This document shows positions 6,301 through 19,100 of a stretch of 64,000 bases of DNA, piece by piece. The notes beneath the pieces are model-generated. The model made no database searches and was not told the origin of the DNA. It was given only the letters and a program-made list of their open reading frames with translations. A program made the position numbers and the translations under genes. The stretch comes from Auanema rhodensis. Taxonomy: Eukaryota > Animalia > Nematoda. Location of the stretch: NCBI GenBank assembly GCA_964057225.1, contig OZ059894.1, forward strand, positions 9,672,001 to 9,736,000, given 5' to 3'. Within the stretch, counting starts at the first letter, position 1, and every line of letters begins with the position of its first letter.

Positions 6301-9300
6301 AAATCCTTCTTGACGATTACGTCTACGAGAAAGAGTTCTAGCTTCGTCAAAGATGGAAACTCCGGATGGTAAATTTGGATCTTCTTCATCATCACTTTCT
6401 TCGACTTCACGTTTTCTTGCAATAGGTCTTCTCTTGATCTTCTTCTTAGGTGTCAATTCTCCGGAAATTTTGCGAGCAGGAAGAGCATCGTCAGATAGAA
6501 GATGTCTGTCACTGATTCTCTCATGATGTACTTCCTCTTCAAGCATATATGGCCGTCTAGGTATGTTGCGATACGCCTCATGATCCGCTGAAGTTTCATG
6601 GTATTTAGCTGTGGTGACAGATGACCCTTCAAAGCTTTCCGTTCGCTCTTTCTTAGCTGTCATTTTCCTGGTTCTTAGTGATGAGCTGACATCAGTAGTA
6701 TCTTGCGTGGTGGGTAGTCTTTTTGATGCGGAACTACGATCAGTGCCAGCATCAGATTCTGACACATCGCTTTTGCTTTCGATGTCAGATTTAAGAATAT
6801 CAGTTTTCTTTTTGATGGTAGTCTTCCTGGTCTTTGTTGGCACGCTGGATGCTTTATCTCCACCTTCTTGTTTGTGCTTAACGCTTTCAGCAGCAGATTT
6901 CTTACTTTTAGTTTTCCTGCTGTCAGAGGTCTCCGATTCAGTTGAAGTTTTCTGTTCCTTTTCATCTTCAGTCTTTTCCTGCGTTAATGATGTTATATCC
7001 GTTTCCTTGATATAATCAGGGTCAACCTTCTCTTTCACTTCCCCTATCTGTTCTTCGCTCTTCTCAGGTTCTGTCTTCTTCTCAATATAAGCCTTCTTTG
7101 GTTCAGCTGCAGCATTCTTTGGTTCAGCTTCAGCCTTCTCTGGTTTAGCTTCAATAGTCTTCTCAGTTTCAGCCTTGCTCTCAGCTACAGTCTCCACTTT
7201 CTTCTTTTTTGGTTTAGTTTCTGACTTTGCTCCAACCTTCTTCTCAGATTCTGTGTGAATGTTTTTATCAGCTTCAGCGGTCTTCTCAGCTTCAGAAGTC
7301 TTCTCAGCTTCAGCCTTCTTTTCAGTTTCAGACTTCTTCTCAACTTCAATCTCCCTTGGTTTAGCTTCAACCTTCTGTTTTGCTCCAGTTTCAGATTCAG
7401 CTTTCTGTTTCTTCTCAAGTTTGCTCTTCTTCTCGAGTTTGGTCTTTTTCTCATCTGCAGACTTCTTCTCAGCTTCAGCCATTTGTTTCTTCTCGAGTTC
7501 GGCCTTCTTCTCTGCATCAGCCTTCTTCTCCACTTTAGCCTCCTTCTCCGTTTCAGCCTTCTGCTTTTTCTCGAGTTCAGCCTTCTTCTCAGCTTCAGCC
7601 TTCTGTTTCTTCTCGAGTTCAGCCTTCTTCTCAGCTTCAGCCTTCTTTTCAGCTTCAGCCTTCTTCTCAGTTTCAGCCTTCTGCTTATTCTCGAGTTCAG
7701 CCTTTTTCTCAGCTTCAGCCTTCTGTTTCTTCTCGAGTTGAGCCTTCTTTTCAGCTTCAGCCTTCTTCTCAGTTTCAGCCTTCTGTTTCTTCTCGAGTTC
7801 AGCCTTCTTCTCAGCTTCAGCCTTCTGTGTCTTCTCGAGTTCAGCCTTCTTCTCAGCTTCAGCCTTCTGTTTCTTCTCGAGTTCAGCCTTCTTCTCAGCT
7901 TCAGTCTTCTGTTTCTTCTCGAGTTCAGCCTTCTTCTCAGCTTCAGCCTTCTGTTTCTTCTCGAGTTCAGCCTTCTTCTCAGCTTCAGCCTTCTGTTTCT
8001 TCTCGAGTTCAGCCTTCTTCTCAGCTTCAGCCTTCTTCTCAGCTTCAGCCTTCTTCTCAGCTTCAGCCTTCTTCTCAGCTTCAGCCTTCTTCTCGAGTTC
8101 AGCCTTCTTCTCAGCTTCAGCCTTCTTCTCAGCTTCAGCCTTCTTCTCAGCTTCAGCCTTCTTCTCAGCTTCAGCCTTCTTCTCAGCTTCAGCCTTTTGT
8201 TTCTTCTCGAGTTCAGCCTTCTTCTCAGCTTCAGCCTTTTTCTCAGCTTCAGCCTTTTGTTTCTTCTCGAGTTCAGCCTTTTGTTTCTTTTCGAGTTCAG
8301 CCTTCTTCTCAGCTTCAGCCTTTTTCTCAGCTTCAGCCTTCTGTTTCTTCTCGAGTTCAGCCTTCTTCTCAGCTTCAGCCTTCTTCTCGAGTTCAGCCTT
8401 CTTCTCAGCTTCAGCCTTCTTCTCGAGTTCAGCCTTCTTTTCAGCTTCAGCCTTCTGTTTCTTCTCGAGTTCAGCCTTCTTCTCAGCTTCAGCCTTCTTC
8501 TCAGCTTCAGCCTTCTTCTCAGCTTCAGCCTTCTTCTCAGCTTCAGCCTTCTGTTTCTTCTCGAGTTCAGCCTTCTTCTCGAGTTCAGCCTTCTTCTCAG
8601 CTTCAGCCTTCTTCTCGAGTTCAGCCTTCTTCTCAGCTTCAGCCTTCTTCTCAGCTTCAGCCTTCTTCTCAGCTTCAGCCTTCTTCTCAGCTTCAGCCTT
8701 CTTCTCAGCTTCAGCCTTCTTCTCGAGTTCAGCCTTCTTCTCAGCTTCAGCCTTCTTCTCAGCTTCAGCCTTCTTCTCAGCTTCAGCCTTTTGTTTCTTC
8801 TCGAGTTCAGCCTTCTTCTCAGCTTCAGCCTTTTTCTCAGCTTCAGCCTTTTGTTTCTTCTCGAGTTCAGCCTTTTGTTTCTTCTCGAGTTCAGCCTTTT
8901 GTTTCTTTTCGAGTTCAGCCTTCTTCTCAGCTTCAGCCTTTTTCTCAGCTTCAGCCTTCTGTTTCTTCTCGAGTTCAGCCTTCTTCTCAGCCTCAGCCTT
9001 CTTCTCAGCCTCAGCCTTCTTCTCAGCTTCTGCTTTCTGTTTTTTCTCGACTTCAGCCTTCTTCTCAGCCTCAGCCTTCTTCTCAGCTTCAGCCTTCTGT
9101 TTCTTCTCGAGTTCAGCCTTCTTTTCAGCTTCAGCCTTCTTCTCAGTTTCAGCCTTCTGCTTATTCTCGAGTTCAGCCTTTTTCTCAGCTTCAGCCTTCT
9201 GTTTCTTCTCGAGTTGAGCCTTCTTCTCAGCTTCAGCCTTTTTCTCAGCTTCAGCCTTCTGTTTCTTCTCGGGTTCAGCCTTCTTCTCGGTCTCAGTTTT

Positions 9301-12300
9301 CTTTTCCGCTTCAGCTTGCTGCTTGTTGTCAGCTTCATTATCAGCTTCCGGTGTAAGTTTCTGTTTCTTCTCGATTTTAATTTTTTTCTCCGTTTCAGTG
9401 TCCAGTTTGTTTTCGATATCGTCATCGACTTCTTTTTTACCTGTAGGTGGCAATCCAGTTCGATCTCTACTTTGGCTTCTTCTTCGTGTATCGTCCACTT
9501 TCAGATCTGGAGTTTGAGAACGTCGTTTAAATGAAAATTGAGCCGATGCGTTGTCTTTAGTTGAACCAGCACTGTCTACTTTCATAGTAATGCTGGCTGA
9601 GATGGGTTGTTTAATTGGTGATGCAATTTCAGCGCTACCTTCTCGTGCAGTGATTTGAGTTGTGATGTTAGTCTCAGAGTGAAGAGTGCTAGGATCTCCA
9701 AAGCGTGAACTAATTTCATCAGGAATGAAAAGTGGTTTAGGAATATTTTTCTTCTTCTTTCCTTCCTCCGCAGGTGATGCTTCTCTTCTTACTGGTTCGG
9801 TCTTGGCTGTGTGTTTCTCATCATGTGTCTTCTTGCTATCTTGATCTTTAGTTTTCAAGCTCTTCTTCTTTGATTCCGCTTCAGCTTCAGATTTCTTTTC
9901 AGATTCAGCTTTCTGTTTCTTCTCGAGTTCAGCCTTTTTCTTAGAGTCAACTTTTTGTTTCTTTTCAGCTTCAGCCTTCTTCTCAGCTTCAGATTTGATC
10001 TCAGCTTCAGCCTTCTTCTCAGCTTCAGATTTGATCTCAGCTTCAGCCTTCTTCTCAGCTTCAGATTTGATCTCAGCTTCAGCCTTCTTCTCAGCTTCAG
10101 ATTTGATCTCAGCTTCAGCCTTCTTCTCAGCTTCAGATTTGATCTCAGCTTCAGCCTTCTTCTCAGCTTCAGATTTGATCTCAGCTTCAGCCTTCTTCTC
10201 AGCTTCAGATTTGTTCTCAGCTTCAGACTTCTTCTCAGCTTCAGTCTTCTTCGATTTAGCTTCAACCTTCTTCTTCGCTTCAGCTTCAGCCTCAGCCTTT
10301 TTCTTTGTTTCCGTTTCAGCTTCAGCTTTCTTCTTTGCTTCAGTTTCAGGTTCAACCTTTTTCTCAGCTTCAGGCTTCTTTGGTTCAGCTTCAGTCTTAT
10401 TCTCAGCTTCAACCTTCTTCTCAACTTCTGCCTTCTTCTTTGATTCAGCTTCAGCCTTCTTTTCAGCTTCAGCCTTTTTCTCAGCTTCAACCTTCTTCTC
10501 AGCTTCAGGCTTCTTTGGTTCAGCTTCAGTCTTATTCTCAGCTCCAGTGGTCTTCTCAGATTCAGCCTTCTCATCAGCTTTAACCTTTTTCTTAGCTTCT
10601 GTCTTCTTCTTTGGTTCAGCATCAGCCTTTTTCTCAGTTTCAGCCTTCTTTGGTTCAGCTTCAGCCTTCTTTGGTTCAGCTTCAGCCTTCTTTGGTTCAG
10701 CTTCAGTCTTCTTCTCAGCTCCAGTGGTCTTTTCAGCTTCAGCTTTCTTCTCAGCTTCAGCCTTCTCTTCAGCTTCAACCTTTTTCTTAGCTTCTGTCTT
10801 CTTCTTTGGTTCAGCTTCAGCCTTCTTTGGTTCAGCTTCAGCCTTCTTTGATTCAGCTTCAGCCTTCTTTGGTTCAGCTTCAGCCTTCTTTGGTTCAGAT
10901 TCAGCCTTCTTTGGTTCAGCTTCAGTCTTCTTCTCAGCTCCGGTGGTCTTCTCAGCTTCAGCCTTCTTCTCAGCTTCAGCCTTCTTATCAGCTTCAGCCT
11001 TCTTATCAGCTTCAACCTTCTTCTCAATTTTCGCCTTCTTTTTCGGTTCAGCATCAGCCTTTTTCTCGACTTCCTCCTTCTTCTCTGGTTCAGCTTCAGC
11101 TTTCTTTTCTGGTTCAAACTCTGCCATAGTCTCGGCTTCAACGGATTTTTTCGTTTTCTTCACAGATTTCTTGGACGGTTTTTTTGTTAGTTCTGCCTCT
11201 GTAAGTTCTCTGGTCTCATCCTCAGCCGGAATAGCAACTGTGTCGTCTTCTGTAGATTTGTCGTTTGAAGATATTTCCTGTTCTTCTGGTTTTTTCAGCT
11301 TTTTTAATGATTTCTTTTCTATGTCTTCTGAAAAAGTGAGATATTCATCTAAAAAAACTAAACTACTAAGTTAGGTAAAGTGAGCTGTGGTTTGCGTATT
11401 CTAACTATATGTGAAACGTGATACATGGACAGACGTATAACAAAGACAACACACCTTTGGACGAAAACACACATAAATCTGAAAAGCACCACGCTTCTCC
11501 AGCTTCATTTACTGCTTGACAAGCGTACTCAGCCTGTTCTTTCCTCTTGATATCTTTCAAGATAAGATAATGTTGACTAAGTGGTTGTCCAATTTCGTGG
11601 CGAATTTCAACCTTACAAAAATAGTTTAATATGGAATAATTATGATATGTTTTACATGTTTATCGTCCTGAGATATGAGTCGACCATCTTGGTAGAATCG
11701 AACTTCTGGATCTGGTGTACCATGAGTGGTTACAACCATTACTACATTTTCTCCTTCGATCACATCATGATCAGAGAGAATTTTATCAAATCGTGGTGGA
11801 ATAAGTTGTGTTAAACGTGGTTCGGTAGGATTAGTTCGTTCAATAACCTATAATTAAGTATTATGATTATATATTTAGTTAATATAAACAGACTCGTCGA
11901 ATTCTTCGTCTTCGTTTAGGTTTCATTCCACCGTCTTCTTCGTCAGATGACTGCTCTGCTTTCGCCTTTCTTGACTTCTTGACAAGTCGTCGGCGACGAT
12001 ATCGTTCACTATCGTTGTACTCTGAATATGTTATGAAAATAAATAATTTATAATAATATGTAATATTACCATCGCAATCAACATTAATTTCAAAGTTGCA
12101 ACTGTCGACTCCTCCAATATTTTCAACCAGAAGACTATAATCATCATCGTCAGTAAATGCGCAATTGGGAATAGTAACTTCGAAGTTTCCATCTAAAATA
12201 ATAAATTATATGAATTAATTTATAATTTATAGTTTACCTGATGAATAATTAAGGTTATACTTTGAAGATGGATTACCCATATCAACTTCTTTCCCATTTT

Positions 12301-15300
12301 TCAACCAGATTAATACAGGAACAGGGTATCCCGTAACTTTACCAGATAAGCTGAAATTAAACATTAAAACCGGTCATTTGGAAGCAAATCAGTAAAATAA
12401 GTTCTCACGTGGTGTATAGTTACATTTTCAAATCTTACGTGAAGCATACACCGTATGCCAATTTCACGTGAAATTAAAAAAAAAGTGAAAAACTTACGTG
12501 ACAGTTTCTCCTTCTCTAGCATTAACATCAGAAACTTGGCTTGTAATTCCAGCTGGTTCAAATTCTCGATCAAAGAAACAACGCTCTTCAAATGGAATAG
12601 ATTCTAAATTTGAATACTTAAACTTCAAAACTGTTCATGAAAATCATACTTTTAACATCCAGCTGTACAAGACAACTTTCAGAACCAGCACTATTTTCAG
12701 CATAGAAAATGATTTCTCCTGATTCTTCTAATCCAACTTCTTCAAATGTTAATGTGACATTATATAAATATTCATCATTTGTAACAGAAATTGTCAAATT
12801 TTCTGATTCTTTGATTTCCTGCTCATTATGATATACGCATAACTATAAATATTATATTATAAAATATATAAACTGATTTGATATATTCTTACTGATGGCT
12901 CTGGACTGGCTGTAAATTTCACTTCAACTGTTACATATTCACCTTCAGTACACACAATGTACTGTTCTGGTTCTTCAAAACATGGCTGAAGCTCTAGCTT
13001 TACTATTTCTTCTGAAATAATTAGTAAAATAAATTAAAATATGAAAACGACACAAACCTTTACGACTTTCATTCAATGAAATACACTGTTGCAAATTGCT
13101 TTGAGAGTTCCTCGATAATGTATCTGATGTACTATCTTGCTCAATTGATTTTGATAGAACTTCATCAATAGTTATATCACTTGTAACTGGTTCCATCATT
13201 TCTTTTTCCAATTGAGCTTGACGTTTAGCTTCGAGAAGTTTTTCTGTTTCTTCAGAAATATATTTGGTTTTGGTGACCATCACATTTTGACTTGTTGTAC
13301 TAAGGGAATCCTTGGTTTTTCTGGTTTTTCTTGTTGACTTGATAATCTCTGTGCCTTCTTCACATGGAACTACAACTTCAATCTCTTCACCAGGATGAAC
13401 AAACTCAGTTGTAGTTTCAATAACAGTCTTCTTGATTATCTTAGTTTTTCCCTTAGCCTTTGGTTGTTCAGTAGACAGACAAGCTTTATCTTTAGCTTTA
13501 TCTGTCAATGCGATGTCAGCTGCTTGTTGCGCTTCAGAATCTTTACCCAATGTTTGTTTTGATTGTGATTCTGAATACGAATCTTTATCTTTAATTATAG
13601 AAGTTGTTTGTTTCAAACTTTCAGCATCATCAGCATCTTCCGAATTTTTCATTTGAACGTTTTGAGAATTGATTGTAAATTCTGTTGAATCCTCTTCTCT
13701 TAAGTTCATTTCAGCAATAACATTTTCTCCTTGCTCTTCAGGAACCTTTTCAAAGATTACAGTTTTCGATTTTTCCGAAAAAGAAGATTTGCCTTTCTTC
13801 TTTATATCCGATATCTTCATATTTTCTTCTTCTTCTGGTGTTTTTGTGAGAGCAAAACCTTTGCCAGAAAGACTAAGCGAGTCTTGAGCATCCTGCTTAG
13901 ATTCGACCGATTTCGTAACGGTGACAGCTTCTTTAGCTTCAGTCTTTTTAAGCTTCAAAGATTTTCTCTGTTCAGATAATGAGTCAGAAGCTTGAACCTT
14001 CTGCATTTCTTTCTCCGTCAATGTTGCTTCTTCGGATTTTTGAGTATTCTTCAATTTCAAATTTTGGTTCTTCTCACTATAGACTGATGGTACCGATGAA
14101 ATTGGTAAAGGTGAAGATATCTCAACTGCCTCTTCCTGCTCTGACTTGCCAACCAATTTCAGGTTCCTGCTCTTCTCACTGTACGTTGATGGTTCCATTG
14201 TGCCAGGCAAAGCAGAGGATTTTTCAACCTCCTCACTTTGCTTAGAATTTGATTTCAATCTTAAATTCTTGTTTTTCTCATTGAAGGTGGTAGAATCATT
14301 AATTTTTGTCTTCTCCAGGCATGAGCCTGTTGTGTCAGCTAAGCTATCTTCCTTAGAAAGCTTAGTTTTCTGCGTTCTTTCAGCATAACTATCAGTTGAT
14401 TTTGTTGGTAAATTGCGAGCTGCATCACTGCTTTCTTCAGTTTGCTTCAAACCGACATTTTTAGTTTTCTCTTGATAGCTTTGACGTTTTAAATCAATTT
14501 CCTTGGATGTCTTGTCAGCTGACAGATTCTCTTCCGGTTTCGTAAACTTGGATCGTTTTGTTTTCTCCGTTAATTGATCCTGAGCTTTCTCGACTTCAGC
14601 GTGTGTTATTTCCGCTTGCTCATTGGCGACTCCTTTTGATTTCAAAGATGATCGTAGTGTTTTCTCACTAAACTCAGACATCTCTGCTGATGTTTTCTCC
14701 GGATTTGATATTTCAACAGTTTGTTCCATGCTGTCCTCCTTAGCCAACTCCTCCTCGATGCTTACGGCTACATCTGTTGGCTCCGATACGCTACCGTGAT
14801 GAGCATGTCGAAGAGAGGATGTTACATCCAAACTTGTACTTTGAACGATATCCTCATGAACAAGTTGTAAATCACTATCGACCGATGTTATCGTAGCTTC
14901 TTTAATGCTCAAATTCTTTGTCAGACGTTTGGATCCTTTGCGAATTTGACGCTTGGTTTTTTGCCTTTCCTCCGTATGTTCTAAGGATGTGTCCACAACG
15001 ACTTCCTCCGCATCCAATGTATCAGCTTGCATCCTAATATCCACATCGTCAGCAGCATTTATCTCACCTTTCCCATTGGCAGACGTCGATGGTGCTAACT
15101 TTTCTGTGTCTGTTTGTTCAGCTATTGAAGCCGAAACTGCAAAATCACAAGTTAACGTACTCGGACATACTTGTTCCACTTAATAGCCATTCTGAAAATT
15201 TATTTTTCGGCACACGAATGCACCCATGAGACTGCACTTTTAGTTTACGAGTACCAGTACCAACATGTATCAAATCTTATATAAAGTTTGTATAAATTTT

Positions 15301-16121
15301 GAAAGATGAACAATGAATAGATAAAGAGAAAAACAGATAGATTGTTAAACATGCAACATGCACAAGACAAGAAAACAGATATTGACGACACATATTTCTT
15401 TGTAAAAATAAAGAAATTCATGACAATATATCCACATATATACTATATATTATACATAAATACATATAGTAGAACGATTGTCACGAGCTCACTTACCCTC
15501 AGATATCAATCGCAACATTAAGTAAACAAACATACCGTCCTCAATATTGATTTCAATCTCAGATACCCCATCATCTGAAGAAGAAATTAATATAACTGTC
15601 TAATAGAAACATGGCAAAATAATGTTTTTTTCTCCAAATTTCAAGATGATGATGACGCAAAATAGAAAACAAGAATAGTCAAGATTGTTTCGCAATAAGA
15701 ACGAACAGAAAGGAAAGAAGAAACGATTTCATGACAAGTATTGCGAGAAAGCAAGAATGTTGAAACTTGAAATATGAAGCTTTTTGGAACAAAATTTTAA
15801 TTTTTTTCACATATTTTAAAGTCTTGACGATATTGTACAAGCTAAAAGTGTTCACGATGATATTGACAAGTGCTTGAACGGTTTTTTTCTCAGCAAAGGG
15901 ACATGAACAAAGGTGAGTTTACAGCACACATGTGCTTCAAGAGAGGTTAAAAATTAAAAAAGAAAAGCAAAAAAAGCATGAGAATAATACAAATTTTTAA
16001 ATAATGAACCTATTTTTGGATAAAAGAACTATGATTTTTCAAAGTAGTCAATGGAGAAAAAAAGTGTGAATGAGAAAAAGAGAGTAAGAAGGATGGAGAG
16101 AGAAAGAGAGAGAGGGAAAGA

Positions 16122-16153
<32 letters not shown>

Positions 16154-19100
16154 AATTGAGAGAGAAATAGAGATACAGAGAGAAAGAGAAAGCAAGGTTA
16201 TGGAGAGAAAGTTGGAGAGATGTACACATATAATCCGAATAAGGGCAATAAACAAATGCTTGATAATGGTAAGAATTCAACTAACACGAGTTTTTTTGCG
16301 AAACTCAGAAAATAGAGTTGATTTACTTTCTGGAAAAATCTCGAAAAAGCTTTAGGCAAATCAGAGATGATATTGCGATCAGTTGGGATTCTGAATTTTT
16401 TGTTGTTTACATAAAAGATTTTGAAAGATATGAGATAGATGACCAATGCGTAGGAGTTCATGATTAATTTGCAAATTTTGGAACAAAAATTGAGAATTAG
16501 AAGAATAATTTGTTAATAAAGATGAATAGAAGGTAAATCTCATACAATAACAATGAAAAAATAAATGAAAATAGCTTCAATATTGTAGAAAATCCAAATA
16601 GTAATGTAGAAAATAGGAATATTGTAATCGAAAAATATAAAATGTGTAGGAAATACTTCTTGAACGTCGCAAAGGTTTAAACGCTTGTGCTACGAGATAG
16701 CTGTAGAGCAACACACGCATGCAGATGATAAATAGAGAGCAGAGGTTGCTCCGTGCAGCTGGTCGGTCGGCTACGTCTCGATGAAGCTGGCTATATCTTC
16801 AGCACTATCTTCAATGCTACATCTTCGTTCTTCATATTTTCTTCGCCATCTTCTCTATCTCATCCTTCTTCACATATCTCAGTCTCGTTTCTATCGTCGT
16901 CAGATAAAATGCAGGTCGCGTCGTCGCGCGCTCCGTGCCCCCGCAGACGCAGATACAAGAGACGCGAGAGCACTCTCCAAGCTCTCTAACTTGAGGTGAA
17001 GCAGCAACCAGCGTCAGTAGTGGTTTTCACCGATAAACTACAAGACATTTAGGCATTGAAGAAACAAGAAGAAGACATTGGAAAGTATATGTAGAGGAAG
17101 TGAAGGATAAGGAGAAATAGATGAAAGTGGAGAGAAAAAAGATAAAAGAGAGAACAAGTAGTGATGACGAAGAACTATAAGTGATCTCAGATAGATTGAC
17201 AAATGCCGATGTGCGGTACAAAAGTCAAGATGAGAATGAGCGACGATGACAAGCAAGGACACCGTGCTACAGCCGGTTACTACGTAGATACTTGTCAAAT
17301 AGGCTGAAGCCGACTCTTTTCATTAGATCAGACACCAGTTAATGAGATACAATGTTTGGGAGTAACAACGTCTTGAACAACATCAAAAGGAAAACAGAAA
17401 AGAAAATGAAGAATTGTCGTATACTCTTGTTTTCAATGAATTTCTTTCAAATAATTTGGAGAAAAAACGAATAAAAAAAAAGAATTAAAGCAAAACTTTA
17501 CCGAGCTCATCTTCTTCATCCAATGTTTCCACATCTAATGATTTAGTTGGCTGACTTGCTCCAACCTTGTTGATAGCACTCACTCGGAAAGCATATAGCT
17601 CATTGGGGAATAAATCTTCGCAAACGAATTGCACACATCCAGCAGGTACTGTTCCGGCATGTCTCCATCTAGCATATTCAACAGATTTCCGTTCAATGGA
17701 ATATTCAGTGATTGGTGCTCCATGATCATCTGCGGGTGGTACCCATCTGATCTTGGCATATGTTCCACCAACTTGAACAAGTTCAAGTTGTTGAACAACG
17801 GATGGTACATCTACAACAATGATTGGAACTTCTAGAACATCTTCATGAGCGTCATTTGAAGCTTTGAAAATGATTTTTCCAGTGTCCGACTGTTTGATGT
17901 TTTTGATTCGAACAGAAACGAAATCATCGTAAACTTCCACATTACCACGAAGTTTCAAATCTTGACCATTTATCGTCATCTCCAATTTGGGTGTAGGATG
18001 ACCAATGAAATGAACGGTGAAATCGAAATGCTTTCCAGCATCCAATGAATGAGTATCACAACCCTCATATGTGAGTTTTGGTCTAATATCCATATCCAAT
18101 ATAGCTTGTTGTGACCAGACAACATTATCAACTTGGGCTGTAATTTTGCCCAAATCGCTTGGCTCAACATTATGAATTGTTAGCTCAGAAACAGCATCTC
18201 TAGTTTCAATTTCAATTTTACCATATTTGGCACTAATCTCTCTTGAGTTACGATACCATTTCACAATTTGAGCCTTCTTATTGAATTTACATCTGAAGAC
18301 AGCGTTCTCTTCTGGTTTCATGATTTTAACAGGTAACGGCTGTTCAATAAACTCAATTTCACCTAAAATATAGAACTGTTTTAAGGAAAACAAAATCGAA
18401 AAAACCATCACTGAATCCAGACTCCAAATCCAATGTTAACGTATGAGAATCTGCAGTTGATATATCCTCTTCCATTTCGTTGCATGTACCCAAATCAGAA
18501 TCAATTGGAGACAATCTTTCCACTGAAAACGCTAAAAAAATTTAACATTTGAAATGCCAGAACCAACCTTCTTCTTCAGATTTAACCCCTTTTTTGCTAT
18601 CCCCTTCAGCTTTCTTCTCAACTTTAGCCTTCTTCTTCGGTTCAGCTTCGTCCTTCTTCTCCGCTTCAGCATCACCCTTCTTCTCCGCTTCAGCCTTCTT
18701 CTCAGATTTAGCCTTTTTCTTTGGTTCAGCTTCAGCCTTCTTTGGTTCAGCTTCAGTCTTATTCTCAGTTTGATCTTCCTTTGTTGGTTCTGCCTCGACC
18801 TTCTGCTCAGCTTCAGCCTTCTTCTCAGCATCAACTTTCTTCTCAGCTACCTTCTTCTTCTTGGGTTCAGCATCAGCCTTTGTCTTTGATTCAGCTTCAG
18901 CCTTCATCTCAGCTTCAGCCTTCTTCTCGGCTTCAGCCTTCTTCTTTAGTTCAGCTTCAGCCTTCTTCTTTGGTTCAGCTTCAGCCTTCTTCTTTGGTTC
19001 AGCTTCAGCCTTCTTCTCAGCTTCAGCTTCAGCCTGCTTCTTTGGTTCTGATTCAGCCTTCTTCTCAGCTTCAGCCTTCTTCTCGGCTTCAGCCTTCTTC

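Follow-up and report, generated by a model that had tools for sequence, protein, structure and literature searches.

A candidate 21-nt micro-exon and its possible exclusion of a 2-kb exon in a nematode titin-type gene

Could 21 intronic nucleotides of a giant muscle gene be an exon whose use keeps a neighboring 2-kb exon out of the mRNA? A sequence-only reading of the stretch of rhabditid nematode DNA analysed here (64 kb in all, the window) had proposed this from a strong 3' splice site, a donor 21 nt behind it, and a spacer to the acceptor of the 2-kb exon that seemed too short to be spliced, together with a motif resembling the repressor sites of the Caenorhabditis elegans gene egl-15. All the sequence elements named in that proposal were found on the minus strand where it had placed them, and we regard a genuine micro-exon, conditionally used and exclusive of the 2-kb exon, as a tentative reading of the locus, with a probability of about 0.38. 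The parts concerned are the following (a slash marks the splice point).

15192 to 15203, minus strand: candidate strong 3' splice site ATAAATTTTCAG/A, its AG at 15193-15192; the core acceptor AAATTTTCAG ends at 15192
15191-15171, minus strand: candidate micro-exon AATGGCTATTAAGTGGAACAA, 21 nt, phase 1-1, reading (E)WLLSGT
15165 to 15170, minus strand: candidate 5' splice site CAA/GTATGT, donor G at 15170
15170-15137, minus strand: spacer of 34 nt from the candidate donor to the acceptor of the 2-kb exon, ending in GATTTTGCAG
15137 to 15148, minus strand: acceptor of the 2-kb exon, GTGATTTTGCAG with core TTTTGCAG, 1.2 bits, second weakest of 33
13058 to 15136, minus strand: exon of 2,079 nt for 693 residues (692 full codons and one split), open in frame, the first exon of a block skipped in RNA

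The host gene and its two longest introns

The host gene, judged from its domains and size, appears to be a titin of the ttn-1 type. Most of this giant muscle gene lies within the window on the minus strand, a Pfam search shows that the flanking exons encode Ig domains of the I-set type as well as Fn3 domains, and the gene contains a single ORF of 13,362 codons. Of the features that define titin-type genes, the I-set and Fn3 domains and the giant ORF are present, and the kinase falls outside the window, where it is represented by a neighboring model of Necator only: orthologous strongylid loci are colinear with the window, and the next gene model in Necator holds Pkinase and Ig domains. Our gene model has 33 introns within the window, with each exon open in its phase. 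Intron lengths are 42–68 nt (median 47, minimum 42) save for seven longer introns, and the two longest of these flank an exon of only 39 nt.

17501-15575, minus strand: longest intron, 1,927 nt, GT..AG, 5' of the 39-nt exon
15536 to 15574, minus strand: 39-nt exon, verified by the junctions of an RNA contig on both sides and situated between the window's two longest introns
15535-15137, minus strand: second longest intron, 399 nt, 3' of the 39-nt exon, holding the candidate

Nested arms at the two ends of the 1,927-nt intron can pair, 17453-17467 with 15626-15640 (15 of 15 bp) and 17422-17437 with 15662-15677 (14 of 16 bp); their duplex has a z of -3.9 against shuffles and could bring the donor near the acceptor of the 39-nt exon. 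The same intron includes a (CT)n-rich microsatellite at 16060-16200, which reads GA-rich on the plus strand. A long-range pairing between the 399-nt intron and a 127-nt intron scored a z of -3.5 against shuffles, but the duplex is long and loop-rich and we gave it no weight. The introns yielded no Rfam family, no tRNA, and no convincing ORF that would point to a nested gene or RNA. Two of the longer introns hold clusters of CACGTG/CACGTA boxes on the minus strand, with three copies at 12351-12497 and two at 1333-1586, which may be intronic E-box enhancers.

Splice sites of the candidate and of the 2-kb exon

From 15191 onward, stop codons occur in all three frames, each before or near 15137, so that, as the sequence-only reading had it, the acceptor at 15192 cannot read into the long ORF unless the 34 nt of the spacer are removed. 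The proposed phase was likewise borne out: the 21 nt enter and leave in phase 1 and are open, giving EWLLSGT, and this phase suits the donors at 17502 and 15536 as well as the acceptors at 15136, 13011, and 11327. With 21 nt and 2,079 nt both in phase 1-1, the frame is kept with either exon. The peptide is hydrophobic and includes a tryptophan, a residue that does not occur in the neighboring segment of 692 residues. The 34-nt spacer is shorter than all 33 introns of the model, the shortest of which is indeed 42 nt, and also falls below the minimum of about 40 nt for C. elegans, where shorter introns are not excised (PMC4165533).

Splice sites were scored with position weight matrices built from the 33 introns of the gene. 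The acceptor at 15192 reaches 9.3 bits, a value exceeded by 4 of the 33 real acceptors, and is one of two interior acceptors with at least 8 bits; the donor at 15170, with 8.6 bits, lies above the median of the real donors. In 4.4 kb of intron the candidate is the sole interval, in any frame, whose two sites each reach at least 7 bits, and the antisense strand of the introns, taken as a control, has none. When 3.07 kb of long-intron sequence was simulated with a first-order Markov model, the chance of a double-strong interval came out at P = 0.012 in any frame and at P = 0.0005 for one that is in frame and open. The micro-exon signal is thus locally improbable and exceeds what chance would give. 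We are cautious in extending this to the genome, given that the candidate was picked from a genome-wide scan and the P of ~5e-4 applies per 3 kb, so that a few such intervals per genome could still be chance.

The acceptor of the 2-kb exon is as weak as that of the candidate is strong, and the 9.3-bit competitor lies 55 nt upstream of it. Given this arrangement, 15192 should be either used, in the micro-exon or in an unproductive form, or masked. The product of the 2-kb exon is rich in S, E, K, and T and disordered, and its 692-residue segment had no match in Pfam, in a word search, or in a phmmer search of 1.84 billion proteins. Because no relative was detectable among these 1.84 billion proteins, we suggest that the exon encodes a lineage-specific, spring-like segment. 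Within the segment are three repeats of ~34 residues with the core (Y/F)(S/N)EKxxNL(K/R)L.

A transcript that skips the block, and the strongylid loci

The RNA data consist of contigs from three small runs with the same species label. Next to none of the words sampled from 12950-15600, which includes the 2-kb exon, were found in the three runs (a share of 0.00), and no contig of these runs lies on that exon. One contig was informative; it comes from run X2 (665 nt, depth 10.6, no mismatch to the window), with nothing in X1 and X3. Its junction 17502 to 15574 removes the 1,927-nt intron at its GT..AG ends, and its junction 15536 to 11327 is given by a loose end of 30 nt that maps uniquely to 11327-11298. 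The contig lacks the micro-exon, the 2,079-nt exon, and eight further exons, a form that the sequence-only reading had not anticipated, and because assembled contigs drop rare isoforms, it cannot show that the micro-exon is absent. The nine skipped model exons add up to 3,210 nt, or ~1,070 residues, in frame.

11455 to 13011, minus strand: eight more skipped exons (Ig, Ig, basic linker, Ig) of the 33-intron model, absent from the contig
11298 to 11327, minus strand: start of an exon of 5,838 nt (exon 11327 below), acceptor TCACTTTTTCAG/A, 10.4 bits, the highest score of any acceptor in the window; the RNA contig joins this exon to 15536

The nine-exon block is alternatively used, since the contig skips exons that are intact, open, and equipped with usable splice sites. 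In the X2 sample neither the 21-nt nor the 2-kb alternative dominates, and the micro-exon is at best a minor or conditional form there. An alternative microexon is defined here as an exon of at most 51 nt (strictly, at most 27 nt) with functional AG and GT that is found in transcripts; the AG and GT signals of the candidate are present and strong, and the candidate is not in the one contig. For annotation of the giant gene, the contig establishes that the 39-nt exon is used and that the nine-exon block (~1,070 residues) can be skipped in frame.

Vertebrate titin skips blocks of spring and Ig exons under regulation of the RBM20 type. The locus studied here resembles it in that contiguous disordered-spring and Ig exons are skipped as a unit and in frame; it differs in its lineage and in resting on one contig.

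The Ig-Ig-Fn3 exon and the conserved part of exon 11327 matched only strongylid proteins (46–66% identity) and anonymous Logan contigs, and our word, protein, and contig searches with these exons returned neither a sister species nor a Caenorhabditis model of suitable length. The Cooperia locus is colinear: its Ig-Ig-Fn3 exon is followed first by a small acidic exon that corresponds in position to the 39-nt exon and then by the homologue of exon 11327. Between the acidic exon and that homologue, nothing in the Cooperia locus could be aligned to the candidate or to the nine-exon block. We set aside three other sequences as comparison loci, namely a contig of Ancylostoma that is not colinear, a Necator contig that begins inside the gene, and a Logan contig with only 110 nt upstream. 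The Cooperia intron after the small acidic exon, at 6600-8000 of that locus, reads like the insertion of a reverse transcriptase (retroelement).

Regulatory elements and competing readings

Three RBFOX-type elements and a hairpin bear on how the candidate might be controlled.

15210-15222, minus strand: UGCAUU-C-GUGUGC, UGCAUUCGUGUG(C), 18 nt upstream of the candidate AG
15350-15362, minus strand: tandem perfect UGCAUG-U-UGCAUG, UGCAUGUUGCAUG, predicted RBFOX sites
16711-16723, minus strand: composite UGCAUG-C-GUGUGU, UGCAUGCGUGUG, in the 1,927-nt intron
15120 to 15188, minus strand: predicted hairpin in which the micro-exon, GGCUAUUAAGUGGAA, pairs with the 5' end of the 2-kb exon, enclosing the candidate donor and the weak acceptor

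In C. elegans, exon 5B of egl-15 is repressed by ASD-1/FOX-1 together with SUP-12 on abutting sites, UGCAUGGUGUGC (PMC5558909, PMC4588554, PMC2777236), and the sequence-only reading had set UGCAUU-C-GUGUGC, just upstream of the acceptor at 15192, beside this system. UGCAUU and GUGUGC are both there, but UGCAUU is without the final G and a C separates the two. An exact UGCAUG followed directly by GUGUGC was found at neither composite, as 15222-15210 and 16723-16711 both have a spacer of 1 nt, and the element at 15210-15222 can also fold as GGUGCA-UUCG-UGUGCC. The looser pattern TGCAT-N0-3-GTGTG occurs twice on both strands of the window against 0.18 expected, with both copies in the sense orientation and in the two long introns. 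TGCATG itself is scarce in the window, which has 9 copies where 22.5 would be expected; of the four copies in sense orientation, three are in the same two introns. The hairpin has a predicted energy of -22.1 kcal/mol and a z of -3.0, with 1 of 200 shuffles as good, and its z is -1.2 in a context of 131 nt.

Measured from the 39-nt exon, the tandem UGCAUG pair lies 174–186 nt downstream, and the candidate follows ~160 nt after the pair. RBFOX sites upstream of an exon repress it and those downstream enhance it (PMC2777236), and in C. elegans the sequence downstream of microexons is enriched in ASD-1/FOX-1 motifs (bioRxiv 10.64898/2026.09.14.751627). Based on this position rule and this enrichment, with which the contig agrees, the likelier role of the pair is to enhance the verified 39-nt exon and to repress the sequence downstream. 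The RBFOX-type motif at 16723 could, from its position, serve the 39-nt exon as well.

Two known designs provide the closest comparisons. Five mutually exclusive clusters of C. elegans have introns too short to excise (egl-15 5B/5A, 14 nt; let-2 9/10, 30 nt; bet-2; gly-5; gly-6), and all their exons are multiples of three (PMC4165533). The candidate and the 2-kb exon share with these clusters a spacer below ~40 nt (34 nt here), lengths divisible by three in both exons, and an upstream acceptor that is the stronger; unlike them, the pair is very unequal and non-homologous (21 against 2,079 nt), and one transcript skips both exons, whereas double skipping is avoided in the C. elegans clusters. 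With egl-15 in particular the locus has in common a GUGUGC beside a UGCAU-type element just upstream of the 3' splice site of the first exon, its setting in a muscle gene, and, by analogy, a downstream exon that would be chosen when the upstream exon is repressed, whereas the putative element here is UGCAUU, without the final G, and has a C before GUGUGC. The architecture is at best another case of the documented egl-15/let-2 design. The 21-nt candidate and the 39-nt exon also resemble RBFOX-dependent microexons in being very short, with strong splice sites, long flanking introns, and UGCAUG nearby (bioRxiv 10.64898/2026.09.14.751627), but the perfect UGCAUG stands upstream of the 21-nt candidate, on the repressive side, and downstream of the 39-nt exon. 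Microexons that depend on PRP-40 form a related class (PMC8378409).

In the mechanism that we posit for a conditional micro-exon, the acceptor at 15192 and the donor at 15170 would both be functional and would define a 21-nt exon. Given that introns below ~40 nt are not excised in C. elegans and that the minimum in this gene is 42 nt, we infer that the 34-nt spacer is too short to excise and that an mRNA using the 15170 donor could not carry the 2-kb exon; the donor would be joined to 13011 or to a different acceptor in phase 1, 11327 for example. Inclusion of the 2-kb exon would require masking of the strong site at 15192, which could come from a protein bound 18 nt upstream, at the GUGUGC/UGCAUU element, or from the hairpin between the micro-exon and the 2-kb exon. 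A switch between 7 and 693 amino acids would be plausible on these terms; the contig shows neither of its two forms.

It is quite possible, though short of even odds, that the interval is instead a chance pseudo-exon or an unused decoy in a regulatory intron, whose RBFOX-type motifs act on the 39-nt exon and on the skipping of the block. The only transcript passes over 15192, although this acceptor is nearer to 15536 than the acceptor at 11327 that is used and is nearly as strong, and the perfect UGCAUG pair sits where an enhancer downstream of the 39-nt exon would be expected (PMC2777236; bioRxiv 10.64898/2026.09.14.751627). The peptide EWLLSGT is unlike its neighbors, and the few such intervals that a genome-wide scan should return at the above P also fit a chance origin. 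This origin is harder to reconcile with a candidate that, alone in 4.4 kb of intron, has two strong sites and whose reading frame is also compatible and open. Moreover, the nematode consensus UUUUCAG is usually enough for recognition by U2AF, and an unused consensus site 55 nt upstream of a very weak one would need active masking. If the interval is a pseudo-exon, it cautions against calling microexons from splice-site strength alone.

The remaining explanations accept the acceptor and dispense with the exon. TTTTCAG with an ATG close behind resembles nematode trans-splice sites, and here, with TTTTCAG/A-ATG, the ATG follows within 1 nt; the site might accept a spliced leader for a shorter transcript from an internal promoter in the 1.9-kb or the 399-nt intron, the ATG at 15190 opening an upstream ORF of 12 codons, a combination that we consider quite improbable. 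The two longest introns of the window, just upstream, could hold such a promoter, and the nine-exon block is missing from a contig of the full-length type. Against it, the frame of the ATG ends after 12 codons when unspliced and meets a stop when spliced to 15136 or 13011, and the introns are those without a coding gene, tRNA, or Rfam family. Use of 15192 without the 15170 donor, which we likewise think unlikely, would extend the 2-kb exon by 55 nt with an in-frame TGA at 15148-15146 (phase 1), and the resulting nonsense-mediated decay would leave less titin that includes the block. A strong site upstream of a weak productive one, with stops in all three frames, suits such an unproductive acceptor, as does the partial dependence of fidelity on nonsense-mediated decay in 14 mutually exclusive exon clusters of C. 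elegans (PMC4165533), but the good donor exactly 21 nt downstream and the compatibility of frame would be left unexplained.

A conditional micro-exon, if real, would add to the sterically exclusive class an exon pair that is very unequal and non-homologous. It would also combine two mechanisms already known from C. elegans, introns too short to be spliced and RBFOX/SUP-12 repression, in a compact and genetically testable device by which a worm would set how long a titin spring segment is. In its most elaborate and rather unlikely form, the locus would be a three-way node, at which the spring exon is included, the Ig block alone is included, or all nine exons are skipped, with the 21-nt gate masked by SUP-12/RBFOX-type factors or by the hairpin and the length of the spring tuned in this way. 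Such a node would be an invertebrate counterpart of the RBM20-controlled splicing of titin.

Further potential splice sites lie near the junctions that the contig uses. A perfect consensus donor, AGG/GTAAGT (10.0 bits), is found at 15491-15499 on the minus strand, 39 nt inside the 399-nt intron; the contig uses 15536, and the 39-nt extension to this second donor is in frame and open, which may make it an alternative donor or an intronic U1 site. At the other junction, the 11327 acceptor is preceded at a distance of 21 nt by a second acceptor in tandem, TTTTTTTAG/A (8.3 bits; 11328-11360, minus strand), whose use would add 21 nt that are open and in frame and read DEYLTFS. Exons 11327 and 13011 resemble each other in their acceptor regions and over their first 14 nt (11314-11340 and 12998-13024; 81% alike over 27 nt), and both exons are phase-1 targets of the same upstream donors.
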